From: Basidiobolus meristosporus CBS 931.73
Lineage: Eukaryota > Fungi > Basidiobolomycota
NCBI GenBank assembly: GCA_002104905.1
Contig: MCFE01000033.1
Location: forward strand, 124,001 to 188,000
Reading direction: 5' to 3'
Length of the DNA stretch: 64,000 bases
Part shown: piece after piece, positions 4,501-64,000 of the stretch
How positions within the stretch are numbered: the first letter of the stretch is position 1
Layout: the number at the start of each line of letters is the position of its first letter
The notes under the pieces: generated by a model
What the model saw: only the letters and a program-made list of their open reading frames with translations
What the model was told of the DNA's origin: nothing
The model's database searches: none
Program-made: the position numbers and the translations under genes

Positions 4501-4616
4501 TCTGTATGTTCTCTCTACAGGTAGATGATATTCTTAGTGTTGGTGTTTGGGTTACAATAATGTGTGTGAGTTATGGAGTAAATCCCCTGGATCACACACA
4601 TTTGACAGCAATACTG

Positions 4617-4888
4617 TCCATTGTGCCTGGAAAAACCTGCTATCTTGCTGATGGCTGGGGTATCTCCAATGCAGATAATAATATGCACTTTTACATGATG
4701 GCCATTTACCATTATCCTGCTGGAAAGCATACAAAACTCATCCAGCAATAGATGCAGGTATCCATTGTACCCAGAAAAACCTACTATCTTGCTGATGGTA
4801 GGGTATCTCCAATGCAGTTAATAATATGCACTTTTACATGATGGCCATTTACTGTTATCTTGCTGGAAAGCATACAAAATCATCCCGC
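4617..4888. repeat. Direct tandem duplication, period 144 bp, inside the CACTA transposase relic
   Basis: TCCATTGT...GCTGGAAAGCATACAAAA occurs from 4617 and again from 4761, with a few substitutions. Confidence 0.85.
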
Positions 4889-36157: not shown

Positions 36158-36497
36158 GGGAATAGGCGGGTTGGTGTTGAGCAAATTGCTTTCCCGGTGA
36201 TTTATAGTGATATTGGGCCTGTGGCGTCGCCTTGCCCAGCTCTCCTTTCTAGGCAATCATGTAACTCTATTGGTGACACAAAGACATCATCGAATAGTTC
36301 TCAAAATACATCAAATGGGCAGGACTAATTGGAAATGCAGCAACACCGCCCTTCCGGGTATGGGGAAGGGGGTTTGATTTGGTTTGGTGAAGGCTCATTT
36401 ATTTCGCGCCAAGCCTTGGGACCCACTGCCATATTCGAACATGATTACGAGCTTCGTTGCACTGCAGCATTCTAATGATGGGGGAAGAGGAGCCGGT

Positions 36498-40771: not shown

Positions 40772-40785
40772 GCTTGATGTAGAAT

Positions 40786-40817
<32 letters not shown>

Positions 40818-41119
40818 CACTACCCGTTCCCACCTTTGTGCCCTTCACCCATTCATCGTTTTCAGGAAAATACACACTGTCAAAAAACTGCCTCGGGGTT
40901 GGATCATTCTATACAGAACAGAAAAGCGATCGCTGCACTTTAATGATGACTCTATAACTTTGCTAAAATACATGAATTTTCTGATATTACATAAATACGA
41001 TACATGCTTAGAACACCAATCCAGCATAATATATACGCGGCAGACCTGGGAAATTGTTGGAACAATTCGGATTCGGAGGAGTTGCTAGATTAGGTTGTTT
41101 GCAACAACTCCTGGCTCCG

Positions 41120-42239
41120 CTATTCGTCAGCGCAATCCTCATCGCATGTTGAAGAGGCAGGCGTAGTGTTGCGAGATCTACGGGTATCGATCAATACTAT
41201 CGGCAGTACCTTGGTCGATAAATCTCTCGAGCTACCGGCTCTGCCACGGGTGCTTCCCAGCAACTTTTCGTATTTGACCGACTGCTCCTGCATGATCTTT
41301 CCATGCTTCCACTTCACACCGCAGGCATTACAAAGTGTTCCAGGACCCGCTGGACCCCTCCTCCACATAGGGGTGCTTTTACACCCACAGTAGCCACACT
41401 TCTTACCAATGCCGCCTGAATTGGGGGAGGTGTTCACGCGTTTGGCTATGATTGACATTTTGTCCGGCACTTTGTCTTTAGAAAACGATTACTAAGGATG
41501 TCGGTCGATCGTGTATTCGAGAAAACGAATGCAAACCTGTTAACCCATGACCGTGGACCTTCGGGAACTTACGGGGACAGGGGCTTGAACCCCACGGGTC
41601 ACTCGCGAAGTCGGAATCCGAGTCGGACTGCGAGAGGCAGTAGTACTTGTCAACCGAGTCGTTGTGGTGGTTTTGAGACTGTTTGAGGATGATCTTTGGT
41701 CGAGGATGGTACGCTTCGAACTCATCATCCACACAAAAATCAATCAGTGCTAATTGAAGCTCGGCCCATAGCTCCTTTTGAACTCCGTAAATGTAGACAT
41801 AGCTTTGATTCGCTTGCTGATAGAAAGGATCCGGCAATGACTTGATCGCACGCTGAGGGAATGATACTGTGACTTGATAGGGCTCCTTCAGAGACTGTGT
41901 CTTGAGCTTGACATCTCTAGGTAACAGCCACCATACGCCGGGGCTATCTTGAAACTCGAAGATAATATCAAATCTATCTATGGGGGATGCTAAGGGTGAT
42001 GTTGGCGGAGTCGATATATGACTGATATTCTTTGGCGGCGAATATGTTGGCTTGCTCGAGCGATGGTTTGACAAAGGTCCAATTTTGGCGCGTGTCTTGT
42101 AGAATTGACAATTCGCGAATACGTGTGGTCCTATCAATATGGTGCAGCTACCCAAGGGGAGGTGGAGTGTTTTGTCGGAAGTAACCGAAACAAATACCGA
42201 AGAAAGCCATTCCCTTCTCGAGGTGGCAAAACTATCCAA
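41120..42239 (-). CDS. GATA-type zinc-finger transcription factor (CX2CX18CX2C), one intron
   Basis: [27 protein letters not shown]; GTAAGT...CTAAAG intron (~41476-41572) joins ORFs 41478..42239 and 41120..41470 in frame. Confidence 0.82.
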
Positions 42240-43991
42240 AATATCGCTAGAGGAGGAACGTTAAACTCGCTTGCTCTCGACATGGCAAGTGTGATTGAGG
42301 CACCTACGTTTTTGAACAGTCAATTGAGTTGGCGGTGGGACTCAAATCGACGGAATTATATCTCGAGGTGGCTAAAAGCCCCATTTCATTCGATATCAGT
42401 AAAGGCTCCATATCACACTGTTCACAGAGGAGATATCCAAACTTTGAAGTTGGCGGTTCGGTTAAATAGATACGTGGGCAGGATTGCTGAGGTTTGGCAT
42501 ACAACGTTTGTTAAAGTGACACAGCAATGAATGTTATGATAGAAATGCCGAAATGGCGTCACTAAATTTAAGAGCAAACGAAAAGAAAAACAAAGCTGAA
42601 TCCAGAGAAAAATTCTGATCAAAACAACAGAGTGCCGAAATTTATAAGCTCCATTGTATGCCCACGCGAAATCACAATTTGATTGGATTGCTCTAGCGAA
42701 AGAATGGTTCCAAAACTGAGCTAGCATTCATACAAATTAGGCCCGAATGCTGGAAGATCACATAATCTTGGTTTTCGTAACACAGATGTAATTGATGCGC
42801 ATTTCATGACGAAATTAAACAGGATTTCCATCCAGATAAAAACGCGATCGAGTTACCTGTCTTGATCAGATTGCAAATCAAAACCAATGCGTCGAACCAA
42901 ACGCGTAACAATTTCATCCTCAGGTTTTTGTTCCAACTTGATTAAATTTTGGCTTGACATCGGTAGCGTGTTGGGTAAATTACCCGATTTTGGATCGTAC
43001 TAATTAGAAGTGGCGTGCGAGCCAGATGTAATTAACAATGTTAACCAGGAATACAAACATGTACAATCAGCAAATAGGTGCTAATGTGGCTTAAGATTCG
43101 AAATACCAAAAAGTAACCTTGGTCAGTTTCCACTTGGGTCAATACAATGCATACATATTCTGAAAGAATTTTGGCGCTAGACCTTTATGTAGTGTGGCTG
43201 CTGCCTGGTCGCGGTCTAGTGAGCTAGACCAAATATGTGTCTGCAATGAAAGCCTAAGGTTTTGTGTGACAATATTGCACACGACTAAGGTCTAGTGTTC
43301 ACAGTGTACCTCAGGTGAGGATAATAAGGGGCAAGTAATGGAGCAGCGACGAGTAGAGCATTAAAGCTAACGGTCATTTGGATTGTGTGGTTGCGGACTT
43401 CATTAGGAAAGATACATACAAATATAGAATACACAATTATAGAAGTGGTGGATCTCAGGTTCCTAGCGAATAATAGGCGGTATGTGGATGAAACATCAAC
43501 ATCACAATGGCACCAAACTCGTCGTGGTGAAGTTTCTAAAGAGGCAGTGCCTTCCACGGATCAATGGATTACACCGGGGACCACTTACGTAGAGGAACGG
43601 TTTTGAGCCACCACATCAGTGGAGTCAGTTTGCCAAAGAAAGTAAACAAGAGTAGTGAAAATAGTAGGAAACCAATTCAGTAACTCAGTTTTCAACTGCT
43701 GAACTGCCAATACAAACTGAAATCCGAGATTCACCAAGATCTTCCACGGATAGAACTAGGCCTAAACTGGGCCCAATAGGACAAAGCCAACTCCAGTAAA
43801 ATAAAACCTATTTAGCAATGGTGTAAAACCACTCACCGACCACAATAGAAAGTCTTCAAGTCCAGAAGTTCCATCGCCGCAACCCAAATAAACTTCCACA
43901 AAGCGTGGATGAGAAGGTATAAAAGACCTAGCACATTAGTTAGAATTTACTCAAATCATCTCAAGCTTATTCCTTTTCATTCTTTTTCATC

Positions 43992-45696
43992 ATGGATATA
44001 GAGATGTCAGCGCATGAAAGTCAAGACCAAAAGCCCGAAGTTGTCTCAGCTGATACGGCGAGTGGATCCCATCCTGTTTCATTTTTACCAACATCGACAA
44101 GCGATAAGTATCCAGATCATGAGAAAAAGATGTCTGAGGAGCCAGAGGAGAAAAAATCCCTTTATCAACGCTTTCGCCTTTACATCCATATTGCTATTGT
44201 ACTCCTCTACACTGGGTATATGATTGCTGCATGGATTCTTCATGGAAAAAAGACCCTTGTGGCTTCCTTGCTCTGGGCCTTTGTTTCGTTAAAGATCATG
44301 TTCTACCACGTTCCTACCACCATTCTCACTAAGCCCTTAGGCTGGTTCTTCTCCAATCTAATTGCATTTGCTATGAGGTTCCCAAGCAAAGTTCGCTGGA
44401 TTGTATCTGTTGTCTTCACCGTCGGTCTGATTGTTGGTGTCACTCTGGGACTACCCGTGCATGAAGGCCAAGGAACCCTGGTCGACAGAGTGAGATCGTT
44501 GGCCGGCTTGTTCGTGTTTGTGCTAGTGCTCTACGCTACCTCTACTGATCGCAAGCGGATTCGTTGGGCCACTGTACTCTCCGGGCTTTTGCTTCAGTAT
44601 CTTCTCGGATTGTTCATCCTCAAGACCTCGGTTGGTTACGACATCTTCCACTGGATCTCGCACATGTGCACCACCCTCCTCGAGTTCTCCAACAGTGGTT
44701 TCGCTTTCATTGTTGGTGATAAGGTAGCCGCCATGGGAACATTCGCTACTGGAGTTCTGCCAGCTGTCCTCTTCTTCGCTGCTATCGTGAAGATCGTGTA
44801 CTTCTTTGGAGGCATGCAAGTGGATGGTGAAGAAGATCGCCTGGCTCATGGTCAGACTGATGAACACCAGTGGTGCCGAGTCCACCGTAGCCGCCGCCTC
44901 GCCCTTCGTTGGTATGGGTGAATCATCATTGCTGGTTCTTCCCTTCTTGGAAACCATGACCAAGTCGGAGATCCACTCCACCATGACATCAGGATTTGCC
45001 ACTATCTCCGGCTCAGTGCTGGTCGGATTCATTTCCATGGGAGTCAACCCACAACCACTCGTCACCTCATGTGTCATGTCAGTTCCATGCGGTATGCTTA
45101 TCTCCAAGATGCGCTATCCTGAGGATGGCGAGCCAGTGACCAAGGGTAAGGTTCGCATTCCACCAGCCGCTGAAGAGGAGTGTAATTTCTTGCATGCAGC
45201 ATCCAACGGAGCTGCTCAAGGTATCCACTTGGTGCTGTTGATTGCTGCCACTGTTCTTGCCTTCATGTCACTCCTCGCCTTGGTGAACGCTTTCCTTACC
45301 TGGTTTGGTAGCTTCATCAACATCGACCACCTAACTCTTCAGTTGGTCATGGGATACATCTATGTGCCATTCATCTGGTTTGTTGGTGTCGCCCAGAAGG
45401 ACGTGTTGGTTGTTTCTCGCTTGATGGCCACCAAGACATTCGTCAACGAGTTCGTCGCCTTCGGTGAGCTCACCACCCCAGCTGTAGCTGATGCATTGAC
45501 CGCTCGCTCCAAACATGTTGCGGTGTACTGCCTCTGTGGATTCGCCAACTTCGGATCGATCGGTATTCAGATCGGATCATTGGGATCCATGGCACCTTCC
45601 CGCAGACAAGATCTTGCCGAACTATCGTTCTCAGCCATGTTGTGTGGCACCATGTCAACCTTGATGAGTGCCGCCATTGCAGGAATGCTAATGTAG
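43992..45696 (+). CDS. CNT: Concentrative nucleoside transporter (SLC28) copy 1; apparent +1 insertion near 44819
   Basis: ASPFVGMGES, GFATISGSV, FVNEFVAF, CGFANFGSIGIQIG; ORFs 43992..44921 and 44806..45696 overlap. Confidence 0.9.
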
Positions 45697-46348
45697 GCTA
45701 TCAAATTGAACTTCACCAAAGCAGTAAATGTAAATAGTATCAGTATTTTCAACAAAAATTTGTGAAATCATTATTCCTATTGGTCCATGAATATATGAAT
45801 CTGTTTAGAAATACATAAGTCCAGCGCAATGCAAATAGTATCATAAATAAAACGCCATACAAAGTATACCCAGAGTTAACCCGCTGAGGGTAGAGTCAAT
45901 CGAATATCACTTTGTGTTACATAGTGTGCCAAAGCCGAAAATGACCAAATAATGATTTTGGATTTGTTGAAAGCCACCGGCACTCATTGGCAGGGCCCAA
46001 GGAAGTGTTAACGATTTGATTGAATGATCGAAGCTATATCTGACCCCGCGCAATCGCCACATATTTGGTAAATATCAGGTGAGGCACCTTCTTCCTGAAT
46101 GGATGGGTGATAATGGAAGGAAATCTCATTCTCAGTGATCTAGGTCAGAGTCTAGATGGATGAAATTACCATATTCGTTTTAGCGATTCCTGTAGGAACT
46201 CCATGTGTTCCCAAGAATAAAGTTTAGCGTGTGCAGGGTAGCGTGCAACTTCACATATAAAAGAACTCCCACACCTCCATTCGAATCATCAACCTACAAG
46301 CTCAACGCATTCTAACTTCCTATTCCACATTTCTTTGTGAATATTGAA

Positions 46349-48026
46349 ATGTCTACCCACGAAGCCTCGGACCAAAAAGTCGAATCGGTCCCCGTCTCCT
46401 TGTTGCCCACCACTGTCCACGACACTTACATTGAGGATGACTGTGAGAAAAAGCAGGAGGTAACCGAAGTGACTGAGGAAAAGAAGTCGCTTTACCAACG
46501 CTGCCGCATTTACATTCATATTGCCGCTGTATTGCTCTACACTGGCTACATGATTGCCGCGTGGATTCTCCATGGAAAGAAGACCCTTGTGGCCTCCTTG
46601 CTCTGGGCTTTTGTATGTCTTAAGATCATGTTCTACCACGTTCCTACCTCCATTGTCGCCAAGCCATTGGGCTGGTTCTTCTCTCAGCTGATCTCATTTG
46701 CCATGAGATTCTCGAGCCGAGTTCGCTGGATTGTATCTGTTGTCTTTACCGTCGGTCTGATTGTTGGTGTCACCCTGGGACTACCTGTGCATGAAGGCCA
46801 AGGAACCCTGGTTGACAGAGTGAGATCGTTAGCCGGCTTGTTCGTGTTTGTGCTAGTGCTCTTCGCGACCTCCACCGACCGCAAGCGGATTCGTTGGGCC
46901 ACTGTACTCTCGGGACTTTTGATCCAGTATCTTCTCGGTTTGTTCATCCTCAAGACCTCGGTTGGTTACGACATCTTCCACTGGATCTCGCACATGTGCA
47001 CCACCCTCCTCGAGTTCTCCAACACTGGCTTCGCTTTCATTGTTGGCGATAAGGTAGCCGCCATGGGAACGTTCGCTACTGGAGTTCTGCCAGCTGTCCT
47101 CTTCTTCGCTGCCATCGTGAAGGTCGTGTACTTCTTTGGAGGCATGCAGTGGATGGTGAAGAAGATCGCCTGGCTCATGGTCAGACTGATGAACACCAGT
47201 GGTGCCGAGTCCACCGTAGCCGCCGCCTCGCCCTTCGTTGGTATGGGTGAATCATCATTGCTGGTTCTTCCCTTCTTGGAAACCATGACCAAGTCAGAGA
47301 TCCACTCCACCATGACATCAGGATTTGCCACCATCTCCGGCTCAGTGCTGGTCGGATTCATTTCCATGGGAGTCAACCCACAACCACTCGTCACCTCATG
47401 TGTCATGTCAGTTCCATGTGGTATGCTTATCTCCAAGATGCGCTATCCTGAGACTGGTGAGCCAGTGACCAAGGGCAAGGTTCGCATTCCACCCGCCCCC
47501 GAAGAGGAGTGTAACTTCTTGCATGCAGCTGCTAACGGAGCTGCTCAAGGTATCCACTTGGTGCTGTTGATTGCTGCCACCGTTCTTGCCTTCATGTCAC
47601 TCCTCGCCTTGGTGAACGCTTTCCTTCACCTGGTTTGGCAACTTCATCAACATCGATAACTTGACTCTTCAGTTGGTCATGGGATACATCTATGTGCCAT
47701 TCATCTGGTTTGTTGGTGTCGCCCAGAAGGACGTGTTGACTGTGTCTCGCTTGATGGCCACCAAGACATTCGTCAATGAGTTCGTCGCCTTCGGTGAGCT
47801 CACCACCCCAGCTGTAGCTGATGCATTGACTGCTCGCTCCAAGCATCTTGCGGTGTACTGCCTCTGTGGATTCGCCAACTTCGGATCGATTGGTATTCAG
47901 ATCGGATCATTGGGATCCATGGCACCTTCCCGTAAACAAGATCTTGCCGAACTATCGTTCTCAGCCATGTTGTGTGGCACCATGTCAACCCTGATGAGTG
48001 CCAACATTGCGGGATTGCTGATGTAA
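46349..48026 (+). CDS. CNT: CNT copy 2; apparent +1 insertion near 47627
   Basis: Same motifs; TATAAAAG upstream near 46256. Confidence 0.9.
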
Positions 48027-49167
48027 ACCACGAATTTCTCCAGGTATCCTAACATGGATGAGCAACCAAAATTATGTGTGTATCTGTATATAGACCAGGA
48101 GTACCAGTGGTAAACTGTAAATAGCCAGAGATTATCGAATAGTATATCATGTAGAGCCCTTCTTCTCATCACTGCCAAACTTACCCTAGATCTTTATATT
48201 TACGCGCAATGAATATCACTGTGACCAATATATTATTAAATTGATAGATACCCTACATGGTTTTCATTCATACGATTACTCATCAACTAAGTTGCAGACT
48301 GGCTTAATAGCCCCATTCCAGGGTTCGTGATAGCCTTTAAAACGGGTCGTGGGTATCTACAGTCCTCCCATAACAGAAATATCCCACTGAACCAAAATGC
48401 TTAAATATGCTGCATTAGGCATGGTGTTGATCCAGCTTTAGTAAAGGTTCGAATGGATGTTGACCAATACACAATATTGGTATTTTCATAGCGGATCTCG
48501 ACAGAATAATTGATCAACCACCGCAGCCTGCAGATGGCAACCTTTAAATGTTTGTACAATGCATATAGTGCCATAAATATGGACCAACACAAGTTTATCA
48601 GTACATTATATTGGCTGACGATTTCCGTCTAACTAAATGGGCTAACAAATAAATGCAATAGTCGTGGTTTCGAAATCTTATCTTACCTAATATAATTTTG
48701 ACAACAGTGGTGTTCAAGCCTATGATGATCATTACTCAAATCATTTCGCGAGAATTCCTGGGTCCACTAAGCCATCGATCTGCAGAGCGCCACTCCTTCG
48801 CATTGGTAGATTCAAAGAAGGGGTCAATGATTTGATTGAATGATCGAACAAGCTATATCTGACCCCACGGAGTAATCCCACAATTAATGAAAATCAGGTG
48901 AGACACCTTCTTCCTGAATGGATGGGTGACAATGGAAGGATATCTCATTCTCAGTAATCTCGACCGGAGTCCAGATGGATGAAATTACCATATTCGTTTT
49001 AGCGATTCCTGTAGGAACTCCATGTGTTCCCAAGAATAAAGTTTAGCGTGTGCAGGGTAGCGTGCAACTTCACATATAAAAGAACTCCCACACCTCCATT
49101 TGAATCATCAACCTACAAGCTCAACGCATTCTAACTTCCTATTCCACATTTCTTTGTGAATATTGAA

Positions 49168-50845
49168 ATGTCTACCCACGAAGCCTCGGACCAAAAAGTC
49201 GAATCGGTCCCCGTCTCCTTGTTGCCCACCACTGTCCACGACACTTACATTGAGGATGACTGTGAGAAAAAGCAGGAGGTAACCGAAGTGACTGAGGAAA
49301 AGAAGTCGCTTTACCAACGCTGCCGCATTTACATTCATATTGCTGCTGTATTGCTCTACACTGGCTACATGATTGCCGCGTGGATTCTCCACGGAAAGAA
49401 GACCCTTGTGGCCTCCTTGCTCTGGGCTTTTGTGTGTCTGAAGATCATGTTCTACCACGTTCCTACCTCCATTGTCGCCAAGCCATTGGGCTGGTTCTTC
49501 TCTCAGCTGATCTCATTTGCCATGAGATTCTCGAGCCGAGTTCGCTGGATTGTATCTGTTGTCTTTACCGTCGGTCTGATTGTTGGTGTCACCCTGGGAC
49601 TACCCGTGCATGAAGGCCAAGGAACCCTGGTTGACAGAGTGAGATCGTTGGCCGGCTTGTTCGTGTTTGTGCTAGTGCTCTTCGCGACCTCCACCGACCG
49701 CAAGCGGATTCGTTGGGCCACTGTACTCTCGGGACTTTTGATCCAGTATCTTCTCGGTTTGTTCATCCTCAAGACCTCGGTTGGTTACGACATCTTCCAC
49801 TGGATCTCGCACATGTGCACCACCCTCCTCGAGTTCTCCAACACTGGCTTCGCTTTCATTGTTGGCGATAAGGTGGCCGCCATGGGAACGTTCGCTACTG
49901 GAGTTCTGCCAGCTGTCCTCTTCTTCGCTGCCATCGTGAAGGTCGTGTACTTCTTTGGAGGCATGCAGTGGATGGTGAAGAAGATCGCCTGGCTCATGGT
50001 CAGACTGAATGAACACCAGTGGTGCCGAGTCCACCGTAGCCGCCGCCTCGCCCTTCGTTGGTATGGGTGAATCATCATTGCTGGTTCTTCCCTTCTTGGA
50101 AACCATGACCAAGTCAGAGATCCACTCCACCATGACATCAGGATTTGCCACTATCTCCGGCTCAGTGCTGGTCGGATTCATTTCCATGGGAGTCAACCCA
50201 CAACCACTCGTCACCTCATGTGTCATGTCCGTTCCATGCGGTATGCTTATCTCCAAGATGCGCTATCCTGAGACTGGCGAGCCAGTGACCAAGGGCAAGG
50301 TTCGCATTCCACCCGCCCCCGAAGAGGAGTGTAACTTCTTGCATGCAGCTGCTAACGGAGCTGCTCAAGGTATCCACTTGGTGCTGTTGATTGCTGCCAC
50401 CGTTCTTGCCTTCATGTCACTCCTCGCCTTGGTGAACGCTTTCCTTACCTGGTTCGGCAACTTCATCAACATCGATAACTTGACTCTTCAGTTGGTCATG
50501 GGATACATCTATGTGCCATTCATCTGGTTTGTTGGTGTCGCCCAGAAGGACGTGTTGACTGTGTCTCGCTTGATGGCCACCAAGACATTCGTCAACGAGT
50601 TCGTCGCCTTCGGTGAGCTCACCACCCCAGCTGTAGCTGATGCATTGACCGCTCGCTCCAAGCATCTTGCGGTGTACTGCCTCTGTGGATTCGCCAACTT
50701 CGGATCGATCGGTATTCAGATCGGATCATTGGGATCCATGGCACCCTCCCGCAAACAAGATCTTGCCGAACTATCATTCTCGGCCATGTTGTGTGGCACC
50801 ATGTCAACCTTGATGAGTGCTAACATCGCCGGATTGTTGATGTAA
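49168..50845 (+). CDS. CNT: CNT copy 3; apparent +1 insertion near 50008
   Basis: Near-identical to copies 2 and 4. Confidence 0.9.
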
Positions 50846-51907
50846 GCTCTGACTCTCTAATTGTCGAGGTTTCTATCTATATCGACCGGAAAGAATGATG
50901 GAAATGGTGTCGATCTGTAAATAGCCCTAGTTCTATATTCTTTATTCGGGGTATTTGTGAAGTATACTATATAGAGTACCTGTTCATATCTCTCTTTGCT
51001 TTGTTTCGTTTATGCCATAACTCAAAAATTAAACTGATTAGTAACATACCTACTGACTTGGTATTCGCCTCTGTTTCCCAGCAGCCAATAGTAGATCCGA
51101 GATCTTTCATCCAACCAAACTTATTTCGATTTAATGGCCGATTTCGCAAACTGATAATCAAGCGATATGCCAATCGTGTAAATATGGTTTCGCAACATGC
51201 CCATACATTGTAGTTCCATGTCAATGATATCAATCAGACTAAGTAGACACGGACTTGTATGTGGTGTTGGTATGAAAATTATCCTGCTTGTAAATAGACA
51301 GACTCGGTTCAAAGCAAAAAACATCACTAAAGGAGGTTCATATAAATCCGATATATTGTTGCCGTCTGGCCAAATGCACCAAAGCCTGCGCCCATTCCTA
51401 TCACTTTGTGCCATAGAAAGCTACTAAATCCCATTTGTGGTAAGGCCAATGATGGTCGGTACTGAAATCATGTCACGAGAATTCCTGTTGCCACCAAGCC
51501 ATGAAGCTACAAAACGCCACGCCCTCGCATTGGTGGATGGTTGGAAGTTGCCAATCTAGTTTCAGCAGTGGATTTGATTGAATGATCGAACAAGCTATAT
51601 CTGACCCCAGGCAGTAATCCTATATTTGATGAAACTCAGGTGACACGGAATTCTGGAATGGATGGGTAAGAATCGAAAGAAATCTTACTCGGAGTAATCT
51701 CGAACGGAGTCCAGATGGATGAAATTACCATATTCGTTTTAGCGGTTCCTGTGGGAACTCTATGTGTTCCCAAGAATAAAGTTTAGCGTGTGCAGGGTAG
51801 CGTGCAACTTCACATATAAAAGAACTCCCACACCTCCATTCGAATCATCAACCTACAAGCTCAACGCATTCTAACTTCCTATTCCACATTTCTTTGTGAA
51901 TATTGAA

Positions 51908-53585
51908 ATGTCTACCCACGAAGTCTCGGACCAAAAAGTCGAATCGGTCCCCGTCTCCTTGTTGCCCACCACTGTCCACGACACTTACATCGAGGATGAC
52001 TGTGAGAAAAAGCGGGAGGTAACTGAAGTGACTGAGGAAAAGAAGTCGCTTTACCAACGCTGCCGCATTTACATTCATATTGCCGCTGTATTGCTCTACA
52101 CTGGCTACATGATTGCCGCGTGGATTCTCCATGGAAAGAAGACCCTTGTGGCCTCCTTGCTCTGGGCTTTTGTGTGTCTTAAGATCATGTTCTACCACGT
52201 TCCTACCTCCATTGTCGCCAAGCCATTGGGCTGGTTCTTCTCTCAGCTGATCTCATTTGCCATGAGATTCTCGAGCCGAGTTCGCTGGATTGTATCTGTT
52301 GTCTTCACCGTCGGTCTGATTGTTGGTGTCACCCTGGGACTACCCGTGCATGAAGGCCAAGGAACCTTGGTTGACAGAGTGAGATCGTTAGCCGGCTTGT
52401 TCGTGTTTGTGCTAGTGCTCTTCGCGACCTCCACCGACCGCAAGCGGATTCGTTGGGCCACTGTACTCTCGGGACTTTTGATCCAGTATCTTCTTGGTTT
52501 GTTCATCCTCAAGACCTCGGTTGGTTACGACATCTTCCACTGGATCTCGCACATGTGCACCACCCTCCTCGAGTTCTCCAACACTGGCTTCGCTTTCATT
52601 GTTGGCGATAAGGTAGCCGCCATGGGAACGTTCGCTACTGGAGTTCTGCCAGCTGTCCTCTTCTTCGCTGCCATCGTGAAGGTCGTGTACTTCTTTGGAG
52701 GCATGCAGTGGATGGTGAAGAAGATCGCCTGGCTCATGGTCAGACTGATGAACACCAGTGGTGCCGAGTCCACCGTAGCCGCCGCCTCGCCCTTCGTTGG
52801 TATGGGTGAATCATCATTGCTGGTTCTTCCCTTCTTGGAAACCATGACCAAGTCAGAGATCCACTCCACCATGACATCAGGATTTGCCACCATCTCCGGC
52901 TCAGTGCTGGTCGGATTCATTTCCATGGGAGTCAACCCACAACCACTCGTCACCTCATGTGTCATGTCAGTTCCATGTGGTATGCTTATCTCCAAGATGC
53001 GCTATCCTGAGACTGGTGAGCCGGTGACCAAGGGCAAGGTTCGCATTCCACCCGCCCCCGAAGAGGAGTGTAACTTCTTGCATGCAGCTGCTAACGGAGC
53101 TGCTCAAGGTATCCACTTGGTGCTGTTGATTGCTGCCACCGTTCTTGCCTTCATGTCACTCCTTGCCTTGGTGAACGCTTTCCTTACCTGGTTTGGCAAC
53201 TTCATCAACATCGATAACTTGACTCTTCAGTTGGTCATGGGATACATCTATGTGCCATTCATCTGGTTTGTTGGTGTCGCCCAGAAAGGACGTGTTGACT
53301 GTGTCTCGCTTGATGGCCACCAAGACATTCGTCAACGAGTTCGTCGCCTTCGGTGAGCTCACCACCCCAGCTGTAGCTGATGCATTGACCGCTCGCTCCA
53401 AGCATCTTGCGGTGTACTGCCTCTGTGGATTCGCCAACTTCGGATCGATTGGTATTCAGATCGGATCATTGGGATCCATGGCACCCTCCCGCAAACAAGA
53501 TCTTGCCGAACTATCGTTCTCAGCCATGTTGTGTGGCACCATGTCAACCTTGATGAGTGCCAACATTGCGGGGTTGCTGATGTAA
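51908..53585 (+). CDS. CNT: CNT copy 4; apparent +1 insertion near 53286
   Basis: Near-identical to copies 2 and 3. Confidence 0.9.
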
Positions 53586-55109
53586 ACTGTGCCTTTACTT
53601 GGAAAGCGCAAACATTGCTTCACTAATCAGCCAGATAGAGCGATGGAAAGAGTGTACATAGCCAGAATTTATCCATCAACAAAAATTTCCCAGCAAAATA
53701 GTATATTTTATAGAAAAACGATTTACAGCTTACCATATATACATATATATATACCCTGACCCATTATTTGCCACATATTTGAATTCCACTACCCCTTATA
53801 CATAAATAAATTGTTTAGTACTCTACTTCTCTGCATTCTCGTTACGTCCATTATTCACCACAAGTAGGATGGCTACTAAACCCGCTATTTTAAAGCAGGA
53901 GTTTCATGTTTGCCCTCTTGTGGTTATCAGCGTTATCTTACAATAGATATGCCTCCTCAGCCAACAATTTCTTTAACTTTGATCAGGTCGTAAAGAAATT
54001 AAACCCTAGAAGATGAGCAATGTAGTTTGCTTCTACCTCATTGTGTAAGTAAATCAACACGTGAAGGTTTCAACCGAAGGCACCCACTTATTTTACGTCC
54101 TCTATATCTTTTCACAATGTCAAATTTTTTGGAATTAGTGAGCCTTTCACAGGACTGCGCAGAGCATACACACAAGTTCGTCTTGATGTCATTAAGGACC
54201 CAGCCAAGAATCAATTAACAAGTAGTGCATTCATCGTTACTGGATCCGCACCACAGTTACCAACATATCTGGGTTACCCCCACACGTTAAGGGTTTGCAA
54301 TTTAGGCTAACTGATTCCGCCAGCTTAGGGCAAACGCGGTATTAAAAGACATCTAATGCCCCTTTATGTAGTCAACATGTCGGAAAAGATTTGTTTTTTA
54401 TCGTTTCATATGGTAATACATTACAAGAATCCCTGGCCTTAGGAATTTGTTTAGAGTATAGAAAAATCCAGCGGCCACTTGAGGCGAAGGTTGAACCCAT
54501 GATTGATGGAGAATATTAATGCTTACGCCTTGAGCAAAAGCGTACTCCAGGTGGGTGCATTTGTCGTCTGATCTAATCTACTGACCAAATATCCGTAATC
54601 TTATCTTGCTCGATAGAATGCAGATATTGCCTGATGCAAAGTAACCAAGTATGCGGTAAGGCCAATGATAATCAATAATCAAATCATATCGCGAAAATAT
54701 CTGTTATCACGACGTGTTGGATTTGATAAAAAGTCCTCATTGGTGGGCTTAAGACAGTTGGTAACTTGACCTCGGCATCTAATCCACTCGAATCAACAAA
54801 TTAAGTATATCTAACCTCATACAGTCAATATGAATTTGGTAACTGACATTTGAGACAACAATTTACCAAAATGATCGTTGATAATTGGAAGAAATCCCCA
54901 TTCAGATTAATCTCGACCGGAGTCCAGGTGCGAGAAATTCCCATATTCGTCCGGCTACTTCAAGTGGGAACTCCCTGTTTACCGAGGAAATAAAGTTAGG
55001 TGTGCGTGATGAAGCGTACATTAGCGAATATAAAAGAACTCCAAGGTCGCACCTTCAATCTTCAAACCACAGGCTCTGCGTACTCTACCGACCCAACCTT
55101 GCTTTCCGT

Positions 55110-56796
55110 ATGGAGATTGAAATGACAGTTCGCGAAGACCCGGATCAAAAGGTTGAATCTGTTCCCGTCTCTTTGCTGCCTACCACTGTTCATGATACTT
55201 ATATCGACGACGAATGCGAGAAAAAAAAGGCCAGCGAGGAACCTGTGGTTGAAAAAACATTGTATCAGCGCTACCGACTTTACCTTCATATTGCTGCTGT
55301 ACTGCTCTACACTGGTTACATGATTGCCGCATGGATTCTTCACGGAAAGAAGACCCTTGTGGCCTCCTTGCTCTGGGCCTTTGTTTGTCTGAAGATCATG
55401 TTCTACCATGTCCCTACCACCATTCTCACGAAGCCATTGGGCTGGTTCTTCTCTCGGCTGATCTCATTTGCCATGAGATTCCCAAGTCGAGTTCGCTGGA
55501 TTGTATCTGTTGCCTTCACTGTGGGTCTAATTGTTGGGGTCACTCTGGGATTACCTGTGCATAAGGGTCAAGGAACCCTAGTCGACAGAGTGAGGTCGTT
55601 GGCCGGCATGTGTGTGTTTGTGCTAGGGCTCTACGCTACCTCCACTGACCGCAAGCGGATTCGTTGGGCCACTGTGCTCGCTGGTATTTTGATCCAGTAT
55701 CTTCTCGGTTTGTTCATCCTCAAGACCTCGGTTGGTTACGACATCTTCCACTGGATTTCCAATCTGTGTACGACACTCCTTGAATTCTCCAACACTGGCT
55801 TCGCTTTCATTGTTGGTGATAAGGTGGCTGCTATGGGAACATTCGCCACCTCAGTTTTACCAGCAGTCCTGTTCTTTGCCTCCATTGTGAAGATTGTGTA
55901 CTATTTCGGAGGAATGCAATGGATGGTCAAGAAGATCGCCTGGCTCATGGTCAGACTGATGAACACCAGTGGTGCCGAGTCCACCAGTAGCCGCTGCCTC
56001 CCCCTTCGTTGGTATGGGTGAATCATCATTGCTGGTCCTTCCCTTCCTGGAATCCATGACCAAATCGGAGATTCATTCTACCATGACCTCGGGATTTGCC
56101 ACTATCTCCGGATCAGTGTTGGTCGGATTCATTTCCATGGGAGTCCATCCGCAACCACTTGTCACCTCATGTGTCATGTCCGTCCCATGCGGTATGCTTA
56201 TTGCTAAGATGCGCTACCCCGAAACTGGTGAGCCAGTGACCAAGGGCAAGGTTCGCATTCCACCCGCCCCCGAGGAGGAGTGTAACTTCTTGCATGCAGC
56301 ATCCAACGGAGCTGCGCAAGGTATCCACTTGGTGCTGTTGATTGCTGCCACCGTTCTTGCCTTCATGTCACTCCTCGCCTTGGTGAACGCTTTCCTTACC
56401 TGGTTTGGCAACTTTATCGATATTGACCACCTGACTCTTCAGTTGGTCATGGGATACATCTATGTGCCATTCATCTGGTTTGTTGGTGTCGCCCAGAAGG
56501 ACGTGTTGACTGTGTCTCGCTTGATGGCCACCAAGACATTCGTCAACGAGTTCGTCGCCTTCGGTGAACTTACCACCCCAGCCATCGCTGATTCCTTGAC
56601 TGACCGCTCCAAGCATCTTGCGGTGTACTGCCTCTGTGGATTCGCCAACTTCGGATCGATTGGTATTCAGATCGGATCATTGGGTTCCATGGCGCCTTCC
56701 CGCAAACAAGATCTTGCCGAACTATCGTTCTCAGCCATGTTGTGTGGCACCATGTCGACCTTAATGAGTGCCAACATTGCAGGAATGTTGATGTAG
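55110..56796 (+). CDS. CNT: CNT copy 5; apparent +1 insertion near 55986
   Basis: MEIEMTVRE start; same motifs; TATAAAAG near 55029. Confidence 0.9.
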
Positions 56797-57449
56797 ACGA
56801 ACGGCCATAAGAAATGCAATCATCGCAGGCATTGCTGTATAATTCGAGCAGAAAGAACGATGGATATAGTGTAGATCTGTAAATAGCTGAATTTAATATC
56901 ATGAACAATAGATTCCAACATATTCTATATGGAACGCCCGCTTATTCCTCACCTTTACATGGCTCTGTTTCGTATATGTCAGGAATTTCACTACAATTGA
57001 TACATAATTAAATCGATTAGTACTGTACGTCGCGCCTTCAGTTACCAATCGAGCATCATCTTATCTGTATCCTGGAGATATCCTGGTATCGTGCTTGATG
57101 TCTACCTATATGTCAAGTCCGATAGTTGCCTAGCATCAAATCATTGCGCTTGGATACGAGTGGTAACAAATCACAAAGCGCACCTTCTCTCAAACATCCG
57201 AACCGCACTGATATGGCAAATCTAAATATACATAAATGTCTGTAATATGATTTTTTTGCTAGTCCAGATGCTCTATGTTACCATTTATTGCCACCAAGTT
57301 CCGATCAGAATTCCGCTGGAGCTACCAAAATAAAATTAAGCGTGTGTTGAGTAACGTACGCTCGAAACTATAAAAGGGCATCAAGTGGTGTAGCTCCTTA
57401 AGCAGATCACAAACTCCACTCTTTTTACCCTAAACGTTATAACATTCCC

Positions 57450-59132
57450 ATGGATTTAGAAATGTCAACTCGGGAAAACCAGGATCAGAAGGTTGAATCC
57501 GTTCCTGCTTCTCTATTGCCTACCAACGTCCATGAAACCTTTGTTGAAGACGAGTCGGAGAAGAAAAAGAGTTCGGAGCAAGTGGTGAAGCCTACACTGT
57601 ATCAGCGCTACCGACTTTACATTCACATTGCTGCTGTGCTTCTCTACACCGGTTATATTATTGCCGCATGGATTCTCCACGGCAGACAGAGTCTCGTGGC
57701 CTCCTTGCTCTGGGCATTTGTTTGCCTTAAGATCATGTTTTACCATGTCCCTACTACCATTCTCACAACACCATTGGGCTGGTTCTTCACCTTCTGGATC
57801 GACTTTGCCATGAAATTCTCGCTGAGGGTGCGCTGGATAGTCTCCCTTGTTTTCACTGTGGCCTTGATTGTTGGTGTGACATTGGGATTGCCAGTGGATG
57901 AGAGCAAAGGTACCCTAGCTCAAAGAGGTCGATCATTAGGCGGCTTGTGCGTTTTCATTATCGTACTCTATGTCACATCGAAGGATCGCAAAAAGATTCG
58001 TTGGGCCACTGTCATTGTTGGAGTCCTTATGCAATATCTTCTTGGCCTGTTCATCCTCAAGACTTCTGTCGGTTATGACATCTTCAACTGGTTGTCACAT
58101 CTGTGTACCACACTCCTTGATTTCTCCAACACTGGTATGGCGTTCATCGTTGGTGACAAGGTGGCCAATTCAGGATCATTCGCCACCGCAGTTTTACCAG
58201 CAGTTCTATTCTTCGCTTCTATCGTCAAGATTGTTTACTTTCTTGGAGGTATGCAATGGATTGTCAGTAAGATTGCCTGGTTCATGGTTAGAGTAATGAG
58301 TACCAGCGGTGCTGAATCCACTGTTGCTGCGGCTTCGCCTTTTGTTGGTCAGGGAGAATCGTCATTACTGGTACTTCCATTCTTGGAAACCATGACCAAA
58401 TCGGAGATTCATTCTACCATGACATCTGGCTTTGCCACCATTTCTGGATCAGTATTGGTTGGATTCATCTCCATGGGTGCCGACCCGCAGACACTCATTA
58501 CCTCATGTGTCATGTCAACTCCATGCGGTTTAGCCATCTCTAAGATGCGTATTCCTGAGACTGGGGAGCCAGTTACAAAAGGAAAGGTTCATATTCCACA
58601 AACAGAGGAGAAGGAATCTAATTTCCTACACGCTGCGGCCAACGGTGCCGCTCAAGGTATTCATCTGGCGCTTTTGATTGCGGCCACCGTTCTTGCCTTC
58701 ATGTCGCTGCTAGCCTTGGTGAACGCATTCCTTACCTGGTTTGGCCGCTTTATTAACATCGAGCAGTTAACCCTTCAGTTGATCATGGGATACATCTATG
58801 TTCCATTCATCTGGTTTGTTGGTATTCCCCAAGAAAATGTGTTGACTGTTTCTCGCTTGATGGCCACCAAGACATTCGTCAACGAGTTCGTCGCCTTCGG
58901 TGAGCTCACCACCCCAGCCATTGCCGACGTATTACTCCCTCGCTCCAAGCATCTTGCGGTGTACTGTCTCTGTGGATTCGCCAACTTCGGATCAATCGGT
59001 ATTCAAATCGGAGCATTGGGATCGATGGCCCCTTCACGTAGACAGGATCTTGCCGAACTGGCGTTCTCGGCCATGTTGTGCGGTACCATGTCGACCTTGA
59101 TGAGCGCTACCATCGCTGGTATGCTAATGTAG
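57450..59132 (+). CDS. CNT: CNT copy 6, intact 560 aa
   Basis: Uninterrupted ORF; ASPFVGQGES. Confidence 0.96.
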   Translation: MDLEMSTRENQDQKVESVPASLLPTNVHETFVEDESEKKKSSEQVVKPTLYQRYRLYIHIAAVLLYTGYIIAAWILHGRQSLVASLLWAFVCLKIMFYHVPTTILTTPLGWFFTFWIDFAMKFSLRVRWIVSLVFTVALIVGVTLGLPVDESKGTLAQRGRSLGGLCVFIIVLYVTSKDRKKIRWATVIVGVLMQYLLGLFILKTSVGYDIFNWLSHLCTTLLDFSNTGMAFIVGDKVANSGSFATAVLPAVLFFASIVKIVYFLGGMQWIVSKIAWFMVRVMSTSGAESTVAAASPFVGQGESSLLVLPFLETMTKSEIHSTMTSGFATISGSVLVGFISMGADPQTLITSCVMSTPCGLAISKMRIPETGEPVTKGKVHIPQTEEKESNFLHAAANGAAQGIHLALLIAATVLAFMSLLALVNAFLTWFGRFINIEQLTLQLIMGYIYVPFIWFVGIPQENVLTVSRLMATKTFVNEFVAFGELTTPAIADVLLPRSKHLAVYCLCGFANFGSIGIQIGALGSMAPSRRQDLAELAFSAMLCGTMSTLMSATIAGMLM

Positions 59133-59722
59133 GCTACGGTTTTCTTGAAGATCTGTATATAGTATCAAATCATCAATATCTTTAAATCAAATTTTAATTA
59201 TCCAACGGTAGTTTTAATAATTATGTTACATACACCTTAATATTAACACCTGTACATATCACCAGTAAATATAACCACTCATTCATTTCACATTTACATT
59301 TCCGTATCTGTTTTGTCACTTTTTCTGATTCGGATTCATTTTGTTTTTTGGTTTCCATTTCTAAAAATATCCTAGTGCCTGAAGGAGATACTGATTTTCG
59401 GATAACACTGAAAATCCGAATATCCGCACAAATCCTTGCGGTTTTCCCAATTTTTTTCCACTGCAATCGACAATCGCCAATCTAGAAAGAATTCGTGGAA
59501 TTCAGGTGACAGCCAGATATGGTAATAACAGCTTTCTGGAATGGCTCGCATACCAAATCAGGGATATTTCCAGGGTTCAATTTAGGGATTGCCAAAAATG
59601 TTGCAATAATTATATTATGGTTTGTGGTTGGTGTGGTGCTAGGACATATGATTTTCGCTGCAGCAGAATCAAAATTTACATTGTACAACGAGATTCATCG
59701 GAATGCTATAGATGAGGACAGC

Positions 59723-61390
59723 CTACATTAGCATACCAGCGATGGTGGCGCTCATCAAGGTCGACATGGTACCGCACAACATGGCCGAGAACGCCAGTTC
59801 GGCAAGATCCTGTCTACGTGAAGGGGCCATCGATCCCAATGCTCCGATTTGAATACCGATTGATCCGAAGTTGGCGAATCCGCAGAGACAGTACACTGCC
59901 AAGGACTGAGTACGTGGAAGCAATTTGGCAACCATTTCTTTGCTGGTCAGTGTTCCAAAGGCCACAAACTCGTTCACAAACATCTTGGTAGCCATCAGAC
60001 GAGCTACATCCACGCAATCGCGCTGAGGAATGCCAACAAGCCAGATGAATGGAACAAAAATATATCCCATAATCAACTGCAGGGTCAAGTTGTCAATGTT
60101 GATAAAGTTCCCGAACCAAGTGAGCAGAGCGTTCACCAAAGCAAGAAGTGACATGAATGCAAGCACCGTAGCTCCGATCAAAAGTGCCAAGTGGATACCC
60201 TGGGCCGCACCGTTGGCAGCAGCGTGTAGGAAATTGGCTTCCTTGTCCTCAGAAGGTGGGATACGCACTTTTCCTTTTGTAACTGGCTCTCCAGTCTCGG
60301 GGATACGCATCTTCGAGATGGCTAAACCGCAAGGGGTTGACATGACACAGGAGGTAATGAGAGACTGGGAATCAACGCCCATGGAGATGAATCCAACCAA
60401 CACTGATCCAGAAATGGTGGCAAAACCGGACACCATTGTTGAGTGAATCTCGGCCTTTGTCATGGTTTCTAAGAACGGTAGAACCAGTAATGCCGATTCA
60501 CCTTGGCCAACGAAGGGAGAAGCAGCGGCAACAGTGGATTCCGCTCCGCTGGTGCCCATAACTCTGACCATGAACCAGGCTACCTTTCTCACCATCCATT
60601 GCATACCTCCAAAGAAGTACACGATCTTCACGATAGCCGCAAAGAAGAGCACAGCTGGAAGAACAGTGGTAGCGAATACCTTGGTGTTTGCAACATCGTC
60701 GCCAGCAATGAAGGCCAAACCGTTGTTCGAGAACTCGAGAAGAGTCGAGCACAAGTCAGATAACCAATGGAAAATATCGTAGCCAACCGATGTCTTGAGG
60801 ATAAACAAGCCCAAGATGAACTGCATCAAGATGCCTACAATGACGGTGGCCCAGCGGATCTTCTTACGGTTGGACGAGGTTGCATATAGCACGAGAAGGA
60901 ATACACATAGACCGCAAAGCGATCTGACTCTGTCAACAAGGCTGCTGTGACCTTCTTTCACAGGAAGCCCGAGCGTCACACCGGCAATGAGGCCAACGGT
61001 GAAAATGATCGCGCTGATCCAGCGAACTTTACTAGGGAATCTCATGGCAAATCTAATCAAGGTCGAAAAGAACCAGCCCAAAGGCTTGGTAAGGATGGTG
61101 GTGGGCACGTGGTAGAACATAATCTTTAACGAAACAAATGCCCAGATCAGCGACATGACAAGGGTGTCACGTCCATGAAGAATCCATGCGGCGATCATAT
61201 ATCCAGTATACAATACCACCGCAGCGATATGGAAGTAGAGACGATAGCGTTGATAAAGTGATCCCTTTTCCTCGGGCTTTTCGGGTTGCTTCTTTTCATC
61301 TTCATCAATGTAAGAGTCATTTGCAGTGGTAGGCAAGAAAGAGACCGGGACTGACTCCGTTTGCGCGTTTTGAGCTTCGTGGACAGACAT
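59723..61390 (-). CDS. CNT: CNT copy 7, intact 555 aa, inverted
   Basis: Uninterrupted ORF; ASPFVGQGES; most divergent copy. Confidence 0.96.
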   Translation of the reverse strand: MSVHEAQNAQTESVPVSFLPTTANDSYIDEDEKKQPEKPEEKGSLYQRYRLYFHIAAVVLYTGYMIAAWILHGRDTLVMSLIWAFVSLKIMFYHVPTTILTKPLGWFFSTLIRFAMRFPSKVRWISAIIFTVGLIAGVTLGLPVKEGHSSLVDRVRSLCGLCVFLLVLYATSSNRKKIRWATVIVGILMQFILGLFILKTSVGYDIFHWLSDLCSTLLEFSNNGLAFIAGDDVANTKVFATTVLPAVLFFAAIVKIVYFFGGMQWMVRKVAWFMVRVMGTSGAESTVAAASPFVGQGESALLVLPFLETMTKAEIHSTMVSGFATISGSVLVGFISMGVDSQSLITSCVMSTPCGLAISKMRIPETGEPVTKGKVRIPPSEDKEANFLHAAANGAAQGIHLALLIGATVLAFMSLLALVNALLTWFGNFINIDNLTLQLIMGYIFVPFIWLVGIPQRDCVDVARLMATKMFVNEFVAFGTLTSKEMVAKLLPRTQSLAVYCLCGFANFGSIGIQIGALGSMAPSRRQDLAELAFSAMLCGTMSTLMSATIAGMLM

Positions 61391-62751
61391 TTTTGGTCAC
61401 GAATCTTTGGTGGAAAGTGTAGAAATTGTAAGAGTAGAAGAGAAGAATGGTTTGCGGATAATCAGGTAAAAGCACTTTTATAGGCTTCGATAAATTTTCC
61501 AAACCACCCTTCCTAATCTGGATCATTTCTTTATAACGAATAATCTTAACATTGTTTGACTAGCGCCCCGATTCGAATGTTAATTCATTTTGAATGATAC
61601 CATAAAGAGAATACTGGGCTTCAATTCACCACAATCGTCGGTTCTTGATGCCCCTCGACCCTATTGGATTCGATCAAAAAATTTCTGCTCCAAATACAGC
61701 AACGTCTCAAACAATGATTCTTCCCGCTCATTAGAAGTGCTTGAGAGTGCTAACAAGAGCGCTTTACCTGGAATGCTCTTTTTATTGCCATCGCATCAGC
61801 GGTTCCCTCTTTTTCGCCATATTTGTCTCTTTAATCCTGGGAAAGAGAGGATGGTGTTACCGCTGAAAGCCACAGCATAATACGGCACACGAGAATAGAA
61901 TTTCCCTGCATACATGTCAAGCCCTATATGGGTCATTCGCGTTGAAGTGCGTATTTCTATGAGCTTTCGGTTACTCCACTCGCATTATACATATCGAGTC
62001 CTTTGCCTCGTTACCTTCACATATCGAGTCTGAATTCTTTGCCGACGGTTGCTTTTCGCATATCGAGCCTAGCGCCTAAGGACTTTGAGTGCAACCATGC
62101 ATATTCCGGTCCCTCATCGATGCTAATGCTTATTTATAGCTGGTCGTTGACTACGTATATATTCCACCCCAGCACCAAGTACCGAGTGAATATTCATTCA
62201 TTGGCTCTTGAGCACGGTGACGCAGGCAATCATCAACGACCTCAAAAGAGAAAAATGAGGGCAAAAAAGGAATCTCCGATGAGCTGCCCAGTCCAATCCT
62301 TGGCAACTCCGGTGTGGACACAATACCATTACTGGCATCGAAGTGCTAATTTCTCAGGATCAGAAATTTATCCATTTTGAGGTTCTCTTGACGAGGAATT
62401 TCTTGCTATATCCATACACCTGTCCTACAGCGCCATCACATGGTCTACCATGGCAACTGCCCATCTTACACAGTAAGGAGGCTTGTAAGATGCTGATCTT
62501 TGCCAACTAAGTACCGCTGCCAGTAGGTCAAGCAATCTCTCGCTAACCAACACTGTCGACTGTGACCTGATAAATTGCCGGAGGACCAAAATGGTAAAAT
62601 TAAGTATCACGAATTACCCATGTAATGAGCTAACGGTGCAGTGAACTAAAGAGATTCCGCTGGTGTGAAGCGTCTTGCGGAGGTAAGAAAGTATAAAAGT
62701 TCCCGTGCTATTGATCAGAACTTCAGAAAGCGTCCAATTCTCTTAGTCCCT

Positions 62752-64000
62752 ATGGGTCCTCGCGCAAAAACTCTCCTTGCTTTGGCTGGTTCCTTCTTGG
62801 TCACCCGTTCCGCTGTAGCGTTTGATGTAGGTGCCATTTACGATGTAAAGTAGAGGGAAATGTTCTAAATACGTTGAACGCTTTCTGATAGGCCACTTGC
62901 AATAACAATCTTGTAGCATGTATGTATCTTTGTTTAACACTAATCAACCTTGTAACGTTCACTAAATTCTCATCCTGTAGACTGGTAAAGCACCGTTATA
63001 ACCAAGTGAATCTACTGGCGTTACTAAATGGATTACTTTTCATGTCAATCTTTCACAAATCCAGGGGTCAGAACAGTTACGGTGGTGGTGGCGGCGACTC
63101 TAGTGGTTGGCAGAAGAATTTGGCTTATTATTGCCAAGATGACACCGTTGATGTGATCCCAGTTTGTAAGTTCTACAAGTGGCGTACAAAAATCCCAATA
63201 GGAACTAATGACCTCTACGCACGCAGCTTTTCTGAACACCTTCTTTGGCAAGGGCGGATTTCCTGAGCTGAACCTGGCTAATGTACTTCATCAGTCCTCA
63301 GCCATTGCTCCACTTTTCTCTAACAGTTTCCTCTTTAGACTTGCAACGTCAAAGACAATGCCACCTTCCCGGGAACCAACATGGTCAATTGCCCTAGCAT
63401 TGGTGATGATATCAAGTACTGTCAATCCCGTGGTAAATCGATCATTCTTTCTCTGGGAGGAGCAGGTGGATCGTACGGATTCCAGAATGACGCACAAGCC
63501 CAAGGTTTTGCCACCCAAGTTTGGTAAGTTTCTGATTGGTCAGATTAAATTCCGTACTGAGAATAACAATGCTGGCAATTAGGAACCTATTCCTTGGTGG
63601 AAAGTCCGATACTAGACCATTTGGTGACGCCGTCTTTGATGGAGTTGATCTCGATATCGAAGGCGGAGGTCCTACTGGGTATGTGGCATTTGTCAACCAG
63701 CTTCGCTCATACTACCAGCAAGATAAAAGCAAGAAATACTTGATTGCTGCTGCTCCCCAATGTGTTTACCCTGGTACGTACTGGTGACTTCTTATCCAAA
63801 TGAAAACGAGTGTTTTCTGATTGTTGCATCTACCGAAATCTTAGATGGCCAGCTAAGCAGCACCTTGAACAATGCGTGGTTCGATTTAGTTTTTGTCCAG
63901 TTTTACAACAATCCATGTAAGTGGATCTCCTATATCGAACGTACAGCTCCAGACTGATACGTTGTTCGACCTATAGGTGGTTTGCAGTATTACAACAACT
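62752..64000 (+). CDS. Secreted GH18 class III (Cts1-like) chitinase, multi-exon, incomplete at window end
   Basis: Signal peptide [23 protein letters not shown]; [24 protein letters not shown]; [11 protein letters not shown] (DxxDxDxE); AAPQC; VQFYNN; TATAAAAG near 62692. Confidence 0.93.

Follow-up and report, generated by a model that had tools for sequence, protein, structure and literature searches.

A lineage-specific tandem expansion of concentrative nucleoside transporter genes in Basidiobolus meristosporus, with single-base insertions in five of seven copies

The 64,000-nucleotide stretch of the Basidiobolus meristosporus CBS 931.73 genome analyzed here (the window) corresponds to positions 124,001–188,000 of contig MCFE01000033.1, whose GenBank record it matches base for base over the overlap. 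A listing of open reading frames (ORFs), together with Pfam scans and a search for repeats, showed that seven paralogous coding regions from the family of concentrative nucleoside transporters (CNT/SLC28; TC 2.A.41), here called c1 to c7, fill window positions 43992–61390. The array is real and reflects an unusually large, though otherwise ordinary, lineage-specific expansion in tandem within a known fungal CNT family. Five of its members, c1 to c5, are each broken in the assembly by a single inserted base; strong purifying selection acts on their coding regions to preserve the full-length protein, and the insertions are, on balance, better read as errors of the assembly consensus than as real lesions.

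The CNT array and its history

Six of the copies lie head-to-tail on the plus strand, namely c1 (43992–45696), c2 (46349–48026), c3 (49168–50845), c4 (51908–53585), c5 (55110–56796), and c6 (57450–59132), with start-to-start spacings of 2330, 2819, 2740, 3211, and 2337 bp. The seventh, c7 (59723–61390), is inverted on the minus strand and stands tail-to-tail with c6. Both c6, which is intronless, and c7 are intact ORFs, of 560 and 555 amino acids (aa), respectively, whereas each of c1–c5 consists of two frames, which read as 567, 558, 558, 558, and 561 aa, respectively, once the one extra base per copy is left out. The c2 and c3 proteins thus corrected are the same. An earlier note on this DNA had described seven CNT gene copies, six head-to-tail and one inverted, with nothing else between them. 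The coordinates, the number, and the orientation all hold; the word "gene" needs qualification, as there are indeed seven coding regions but only c6 and c7 are open, the other five being frameshifted in the assembly.

The assignment to the CNT/SLC28 family, also made earlier, is borne out by three Pfam domains and by matches to solved CNT structures. Nucleos_tra2_N, Gate, and Nucleos_tra2_C occur in this order in all seven copies, within one ORF in c6 and c7 and split over two ORF pieces per copy in c1–c5. With c6 as the query, the structural matches, which extend across the entire transport and scaffold core, include hCNT3 (6KSW; E = 5.5e-94, query residues 132–559), bovine CNT3 (6e-94), vcCNT (6e-78), and CNTnw (1e-77). 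Frame-corrected forms of c1–c5 were used for the phylogenetic tree, the variant counts, and the ratios of non-synonymous to synonymous divergence (dN/dS), and the database, fold, and search tools were given c6, c7, or the separate ORF pieces.

The spacers of the array measure 590–1524 bp, with a GC content of 35–41%. Searches of these spacers found no ORF of their own of at least 100 aa (beyond gene overlaps), CNT fragment, tRNA, or Rfam match, and transposons, tRNAs, known RNAs, and further CNT fragments were accordingly rejected as spacer content. The distal end of the array is 29.5 kb from the end of the 214,922-bp contig, and the array spans the region 30–47 kb from that end.

How did the array come about? 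In Basidiobolus ranarum, the syntenic locus (JASJQH010006925.1) carries its genes in the order ABCF3–GATA–CNT–CNT–CBM5_12–FTR1–Cu oxidase, and its two CNTs are convergent and both intact. The B. meristosporus array is enclosed by the same flanks. On the left are an ABCF3-type ATPase gene (+) and a GATA-factor gene (−) at 38524–42411, ordered as in B. ranarum, and on the right is the start of a CBM_5_12 gene (62685–64000, +), with FTR1 and the multicopper oxidase beyond the window.

A maximum-likelihood tree placed the Basidiobolus CNTs together in a single clade (100/100) among fungal CNTs. Within this clade, c7 grouped with its B. ranarum orthologue, K7432_001982, and K7432_001983 was sister to c1–c6 (88/86), among which the order of branching was c6, c5, c1, and then c2/c3/c4. 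Synonymous divergence (dS) was 0.04–0.065 among c2–c4, 0.28 for c1, 0.46 for c5, and ~1.0–1.2 for c6; between B. meristosporus and B. ranarum, synonymous sites are saturated. Because the syntenic locus of B. ranarum has two CNTs and the order in both the tree and dS fits, the forward gene went from one copy to six (c1–c6) in the B. meristosporus lineage. A bacterial origin was rejected in view of the position of the Basidiobolus CNTs among fungal CNTs in the tree and of their eukaryote-type N-terminal extension.

The evolutionary course of the array is clear. Its ancestral state was a convergent CNT pair like the one that persists in B. ranarum, the forward member was amplified to six by unequal crossing-over, and gene conversion keeps the coding regions alike, including between the inverted neighbors c6 and c7. 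At their 3′ ends, these two genes share a perfect identity of 134 nucleotides (nt), with c6 58974–59107 equal to c7 59748–59881 on the opposite strand; otherwise, the genes are ~72% identical. This tract indicates a recent gene conversion between the inverted neighbors. Of the informative sites over codons 281–400, moreover, 37 unite c6 with c7 and 21 unite it with c1–c5, whereas in the three blocks outside this interval (codons 1–520) the corresponding counts are 4:27, 22:47, and 20:57. This central tract includes the HP1 loop, which explains why c6 has a Gln there like c7, while c1–c5, its nearest relatives, and K7432_001983 have a Met.

Similar signs appear among the forward copies. Compared with c2, c1 is a mosaic, being 58–72% identical over the 5′ 80 codons and 93–100% identical from codon 161 on, that is, over the 3′ two-thirds. 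The promoter-proximal spacer upstream of c3 (48801–49188, +) is homologous to 45985–46369 at c2 and to 51437–51928 at c4, and these spacers are 85–91% identical, compared with 97–100% for the coding regions. At the level of sequence, concerted evolution of the array copies is evident.

Yeast subtelomeric transporter families such as HXT and MAL are nutrient importers that have been amplified head-to-tail, with homogenized coding regions, drifting spacers, and strong selection. The CNT array follows the same pattern and likewise lies close to a chromosome end; it differs in belonging to another family, in having an older inverted partner, and in carrying single-base breaks in five copies.

Selective constraint and the nature of the insertions

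An alignment of the seven copies at the DNA level showed that each of c1–c5 is broken by one 1-nt insertion unlike all the other copies. The extra bases are G at 44820 (c1), C at 47627 (c2), A at 50008 (c3), A at 53285 (c4), and A at 55986 (c5), and all five stand in the public GenBank record MCFE01000033.1.

When the extra base is removed, c1–c5 are all stop-free over 558–567 aa. In the corrected frames, dN/dS was 0.05–0.17 for the older pairs and 0–0.04 among c2, c3, and c4. Between c2 and c3, there are 24 synonymous and no non-synonymous differences, and among c2–c4 as a whole, the pairs differ by 0–2 non-synonymous and 15–25 synonymous changes. The synonymous changes are located on both sides of the breaks, and they account for 31 of the 33 variable codons of c2–c4. 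Furthermore, c1–c5 show no deletions and no nonsense codons, with one lesion per copy. These results demonstrate that strong purifying selection maintains a full-length protein in c1–c5. Since neutral decay would have added many non-synonymous changes, the strong synonymous bias means that c1–c5 are not old pseudogenes, and a long-standing pseudogene status is excluded.

What, then, are the five extra bases? We lean, with moderate confidence, toward consensus errors of the assembly, rather than real lesions. CBS 931.73 was isolated from gecko dung, and its genome was sequenced with PacBio only (PMC7466969). Where two read populations, either alleles or near-identical copies, piled up, the consensus may have kept both variants. 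All five lesions are +1 insertions that immediately follow the third position of a codon, and each inserted base could replace the third base before it without changing the amino acid (CAA+G, CTT+C, CTG+A, CAG+A, and ACC+A in c1 to c5, respectively). A random insertion can be read as such a synonymous doublet with a probability of ~0.45, and five of five with ~0.018. Synonymous doublets are what would be expected if the consensus had kept both variants, because nearly all variation among the copies is synonymous and at third positions. The G inserted in c1 is also what c2–c4 have at the same site, and it lies at the exact point from which a 146-nt run is identical to c2. The insertion sites differ among paralogues that are 97–100% identical. 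A sixth case, AAT+C, was found at codon 4 of a CNT gene on MCFE01001199.1, part of a second CNT array described below; its 99.7%-identical twin on MCFE01000325.1 is without the extra base. If the insertions are consensus errors, all seven genes are probably functional.

Several observations weigh against this explanation. A high genome-wide indel error rate is not supported as a cause: two 99.7%-identical contigs differ by one 1-nt indel in ~12 kb, and further long ORFs of the window, those of Copia, ABCF, c6, and c7, have no break in ~9.5 kb, where ~5.6 would be expected at the rate of c1–c5 (P(0) ~0.004). Because the five breaks fall within the 8.5 kb of c1–c5, a local cause must be postulated, for example, collapsed haplotypes or copies. 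The pattern of synonymous doublets is significant only at ~0.02, and simple homopolymer extension could also account for two of the five insertions. Random error would not readily place exactly one lesion in each young copy and none in the two old copies. In addition, word searches with c6 and with a 200-aa piece over three break sites returned no near-identical read-derived proteins (Logan, ENA), and cluster look-ups found nothing beyond models from CBS 931.73, proteins from B. ranarum, and three ENA fragments of 51 aa.

Alternatively, the insertions might be real, so that c1–c5 would be very recently inactivated null alleles, c6 and c7 the sole transporters left, and the array in decay after its expansion. 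We regard this as unlikely, though deserving serious weight. The insertions are present in the deposited sequence, 1-nt indels are otherwise few in the assembly, and the young subgroup with Met in HP1 accounts for every one of the broken copies, which could mean that this class is no longer needed; subtelomeric arrays also turn over fast. On the other hand, the breaks have no accompanying damage, with zero in-frame stops, zero deletions, and the synonymous excess on either side of them, whereas under neutral decay one would expect several times as many substitutions as indels, with some three quarters of these substitutions non-synonymous. Independent +1 hits in five copies that are all synonymous third-position doublets are unlike spontaneous mutation, and ongoing gene conversion should either erase or spread such breaks.

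A different kind of artefact would concern the copy number itself, with near-identical c2–c4-like units or haplotypes having been collapsed, or fewer units over-expanded. Mixed read piles would fit the doublets at variant sites, c2–c4 are 97% identical over units of 2.7–2.8 kb, and the second CNT array is split over three contigs that are 99.3–99.8% identical, an indication that the assembly handles such repeats imperfectly. However, every copy is set apart by a particular set of synonymous differences and by an individual spacer (673, 1162, 1083, 1524, 653, and 590 bp) with unique segments, which makes duplication by the assembler unlikely, and units of 2.3–3.2 kb are normally spanned by long reads. 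We consider this explanation quite improbable.

Could the insertions be genuine and the genes nonetheless be kept for their full-length protein, either recoded or toggled by conversion from intact neighbors in a manner resembling phase variation? We give this very little credence; if true, it would mean a eukaryotic subtelomeric transporter array in which the majority of genes are kept +1-shifted. Recoding taken by itself, in which site-specific +1 ribosomal frameshifting, other recoding, or editing would decode the real insertions for regulated or low-level expression, is more improbable still. Exactly one +1 shift is needed per broken copy, all insertions lie at codon boundaries, and the full-length frame is strongly selected, but there is no common slippery motif of the kind known from Ty1, Ty3, EST3, and OAZ1, the contexts CAA|GUG, CUU|CAC, CUG|AAU, CAG|AAA, and ACC|AGU allow no +1 re-pairing, sites that differ among nearly identical paralogues are not inherited recoding signals, and the B. 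ranarum orthologues and all other Basidiobolus CNTs read straight through.

Whatever their origin, the single-base breaks have distorted five of the seven gene models at the array, and for this reason caution is needed with any gene number or protein sequence drawn from this annotation. The deposited model of c1 (ORY04636, 502 aa) bypasses the insertion site, that of c2 (ORY04637, 538 aa) excises 58 nt as an "intron", and that of c3 (ORY04638, 548 aa) excises 31 nt in the same way. The product called for c4 (415 aa) ends at the stop created by the frameshift, and the deposited c5 model has 517 aa. Introns at the breaks of c1–c5 were rejected, as these are single-base breaks and no intron interrupts c6, c7, either B. 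ranarum gene, or any of the dispersed paralogues. The introns of 31 nt and 58 nt in the c3 and c2 models are implausibly short and would cut out conserved membrane segments. For reference, a Basidiobolus intron in the serpin gene near the array is 55 nt long (GTATTG...CTCTAAC...CAG).

Predicted transport function

In the alignment of c6 with hCNT3, the equivalents of E343, T370, I371, S374, V375, E519, F563, N565, and S568 are kept, and the motifs include NEF, FANFGS (FANIGS in hCNT3), and the GE in HP1; the roles of these residues in hCNT3 are taken from PMC7440666. From these ribose-binding and cation-site scaffold residues, the array proteins should be cation-coupled nucleoside importers with an elevator-type core. 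The bacterial NupC, vcCNT, and CNTnw share this transport and scaffold core but lack the ~160-residue N-terminal region with three hydrophobic segments that the array CNTs have. The likeness to hCNT3 extends to the ribose-pocket and, in part, to the base-pocket residues, and the identity of the aligned core is moderate.

Differences from hCNT3 are at the Na1 site, where Asn336-Ile337 is replaced by Ser-Pro, and at Thr342, replaced by Gly; the Ser and the Gly are present in all seven copies. The earlier note had pointed to the change from Asn to Ser at the Na+ site (ASPFV) as consistent with H+ coupling in fungi. The Ser itself was confirmed in all copies, but it is a general fungal trait and not special to this array: among more than 100 fungal matches, the Na1-site Asn (N336 in hCNT3, N149 in vcCNT) is Ser or Thr, with ASPF[VI]GQGE as the common form and ATPF in the Ascomycete matches. 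Because the Ser is family-wide in fungi, it carries no information on this array in particular.

H+ coupling is reported for CaCNT of Candida albicans and for CntA of Aspergillus nidulans in the accounts of PMC5307856 and of Loewen 2003 as cited by PMC7440666. By analogy with these transporters, the array CNTs are probably H+-coupled. They belong to the same family, have the eukaryote-type N-terminal extension, and carry an HP1 of the fungal A-S/T-P-F-[VI]-G-Q-G-E type, in which the Na+-site Asn is absent. In contrast, CNT is a single gene in those two species, compared with seven in the array and at least eight elsewhere in B. meristosporus, and c1–c5 have Met for Gln.

This last position is part of the base pocket. 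There, c6 and c7 combine Gly-Gln with S-V (HP1 ASPFVGQGE in c6), as in hCNT3 G340/Q341, and c1–c5 combine Gly-Met with S-V (ASPFVGMGE in c1). Such pockets are compatible with the binding of nucleosides, hCNT2 having Met as well. The Gly-Met pair is also present in the dispersed B. meristosporus CNTs, in Entomophthora, and in Podochytrium. In human CNTs, the change from Ser-Gln to Gly-Met shifts selectivity to purines or to broad specificity, and the Gly-Met pair is of the hCNT2 type, as defined by the hCNT1 S319G/Q320M conversion (PMC7440666). Judging from these residues, the array probably offers two nucleoside selectivity classes. The Gly-Met and Gly-Gln copies would thereby form a natural series for how a pocket residue sets selectivity in fungal CNTs of the H+ type.

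CNT genes elsewhere and other content of the window

The assembly of B. meristosporus holds at least 15 CNT genes, seven in the array and at least eight elsewhere. Four are dispersed, single, intronless genes on other contigs. Others form a second array, whose repeat unit, with a period of ~4.9 kb, consists of a 560-aa CNT gene and, after it, a gene for a 234-aa protoglobin (PF11563); this array extends over MCFE01000539.1, MCFE01000325.1, and MCFE01001199.1, and its CNT coding sequences differ by 4–26 nt. For a fungus, it is odd that a protoglobin has been amplified along with a nucleoside transporter. In the same array, the models ORX91344 (947 aa; MCFE01000325.1, locus 2625–6858) and ORX64523 (864 aa; MCFE01001199.1, locus 2724–6819) fuse an upstream ABC ATPase gene to the first CNT of the array, which is probably an annotation merge.

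The earlier note had also held the number of CNTs to be unusual, and a count across fungi agrees with it. B. ranarum has at least four CNT genes, two of them at the syntenic locus, and the early-diverging fungi other than Basidiobolus have 1–3 CNT clusters each among the best 120 matches. Aspergilli have one CNT homologue or none, and Saccharomyces cerevisiae and Schizosaccharomyces pombe have none (PMC5307856). The CNT copy number of B. meristosporus is moderately unusual for a fungus. With one CNT or none in most characterized fungi, the expansion may point to a heavy investment in nucleoside uptake by a dweller of dung and gut. The suggestion that the array is a dedicated nucleoside-scavenging locus did not survive, given the four dispersed CNTs and the second CNT/protoglobin array on other contigs, and nucleoside scavenging in a gut or dung niche as the reason for the array is plausible but speculative.

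Other features of the window include, in its AT-richer first third, an intact Copia-type Gag-Pol ORF of 1367 aa (15963–20066, +) with gag, a protease-like barrel, integrase, and reverse transcriptase, and a fragment of a DDE_Tnp_4 (Harbinger-type) transposase (8078–8650, −). In the serpin gene (35062–36256, −), the exon for the reactive-center loop follows the canonical intron mentioned above. The GATA-factor gene on the left flank (41123–42411, −) has a frame change near 41478–41523, whereas the B. ranarum gene runs through in a single uninterrupted ORF; an unrecognized short intron or another single-base problem could be the cause, and the region is too divergent to serve as a test of assembly quality. 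Finally, the three 51-aa fragments from the cluster look-ups come from ENA metagenome contigs of 603–2043 bp and cluster at ≥90% with c7 and its B. ranarum orthologue, which hints that some of the public metagenomes contain DNA from Basidiobolus.

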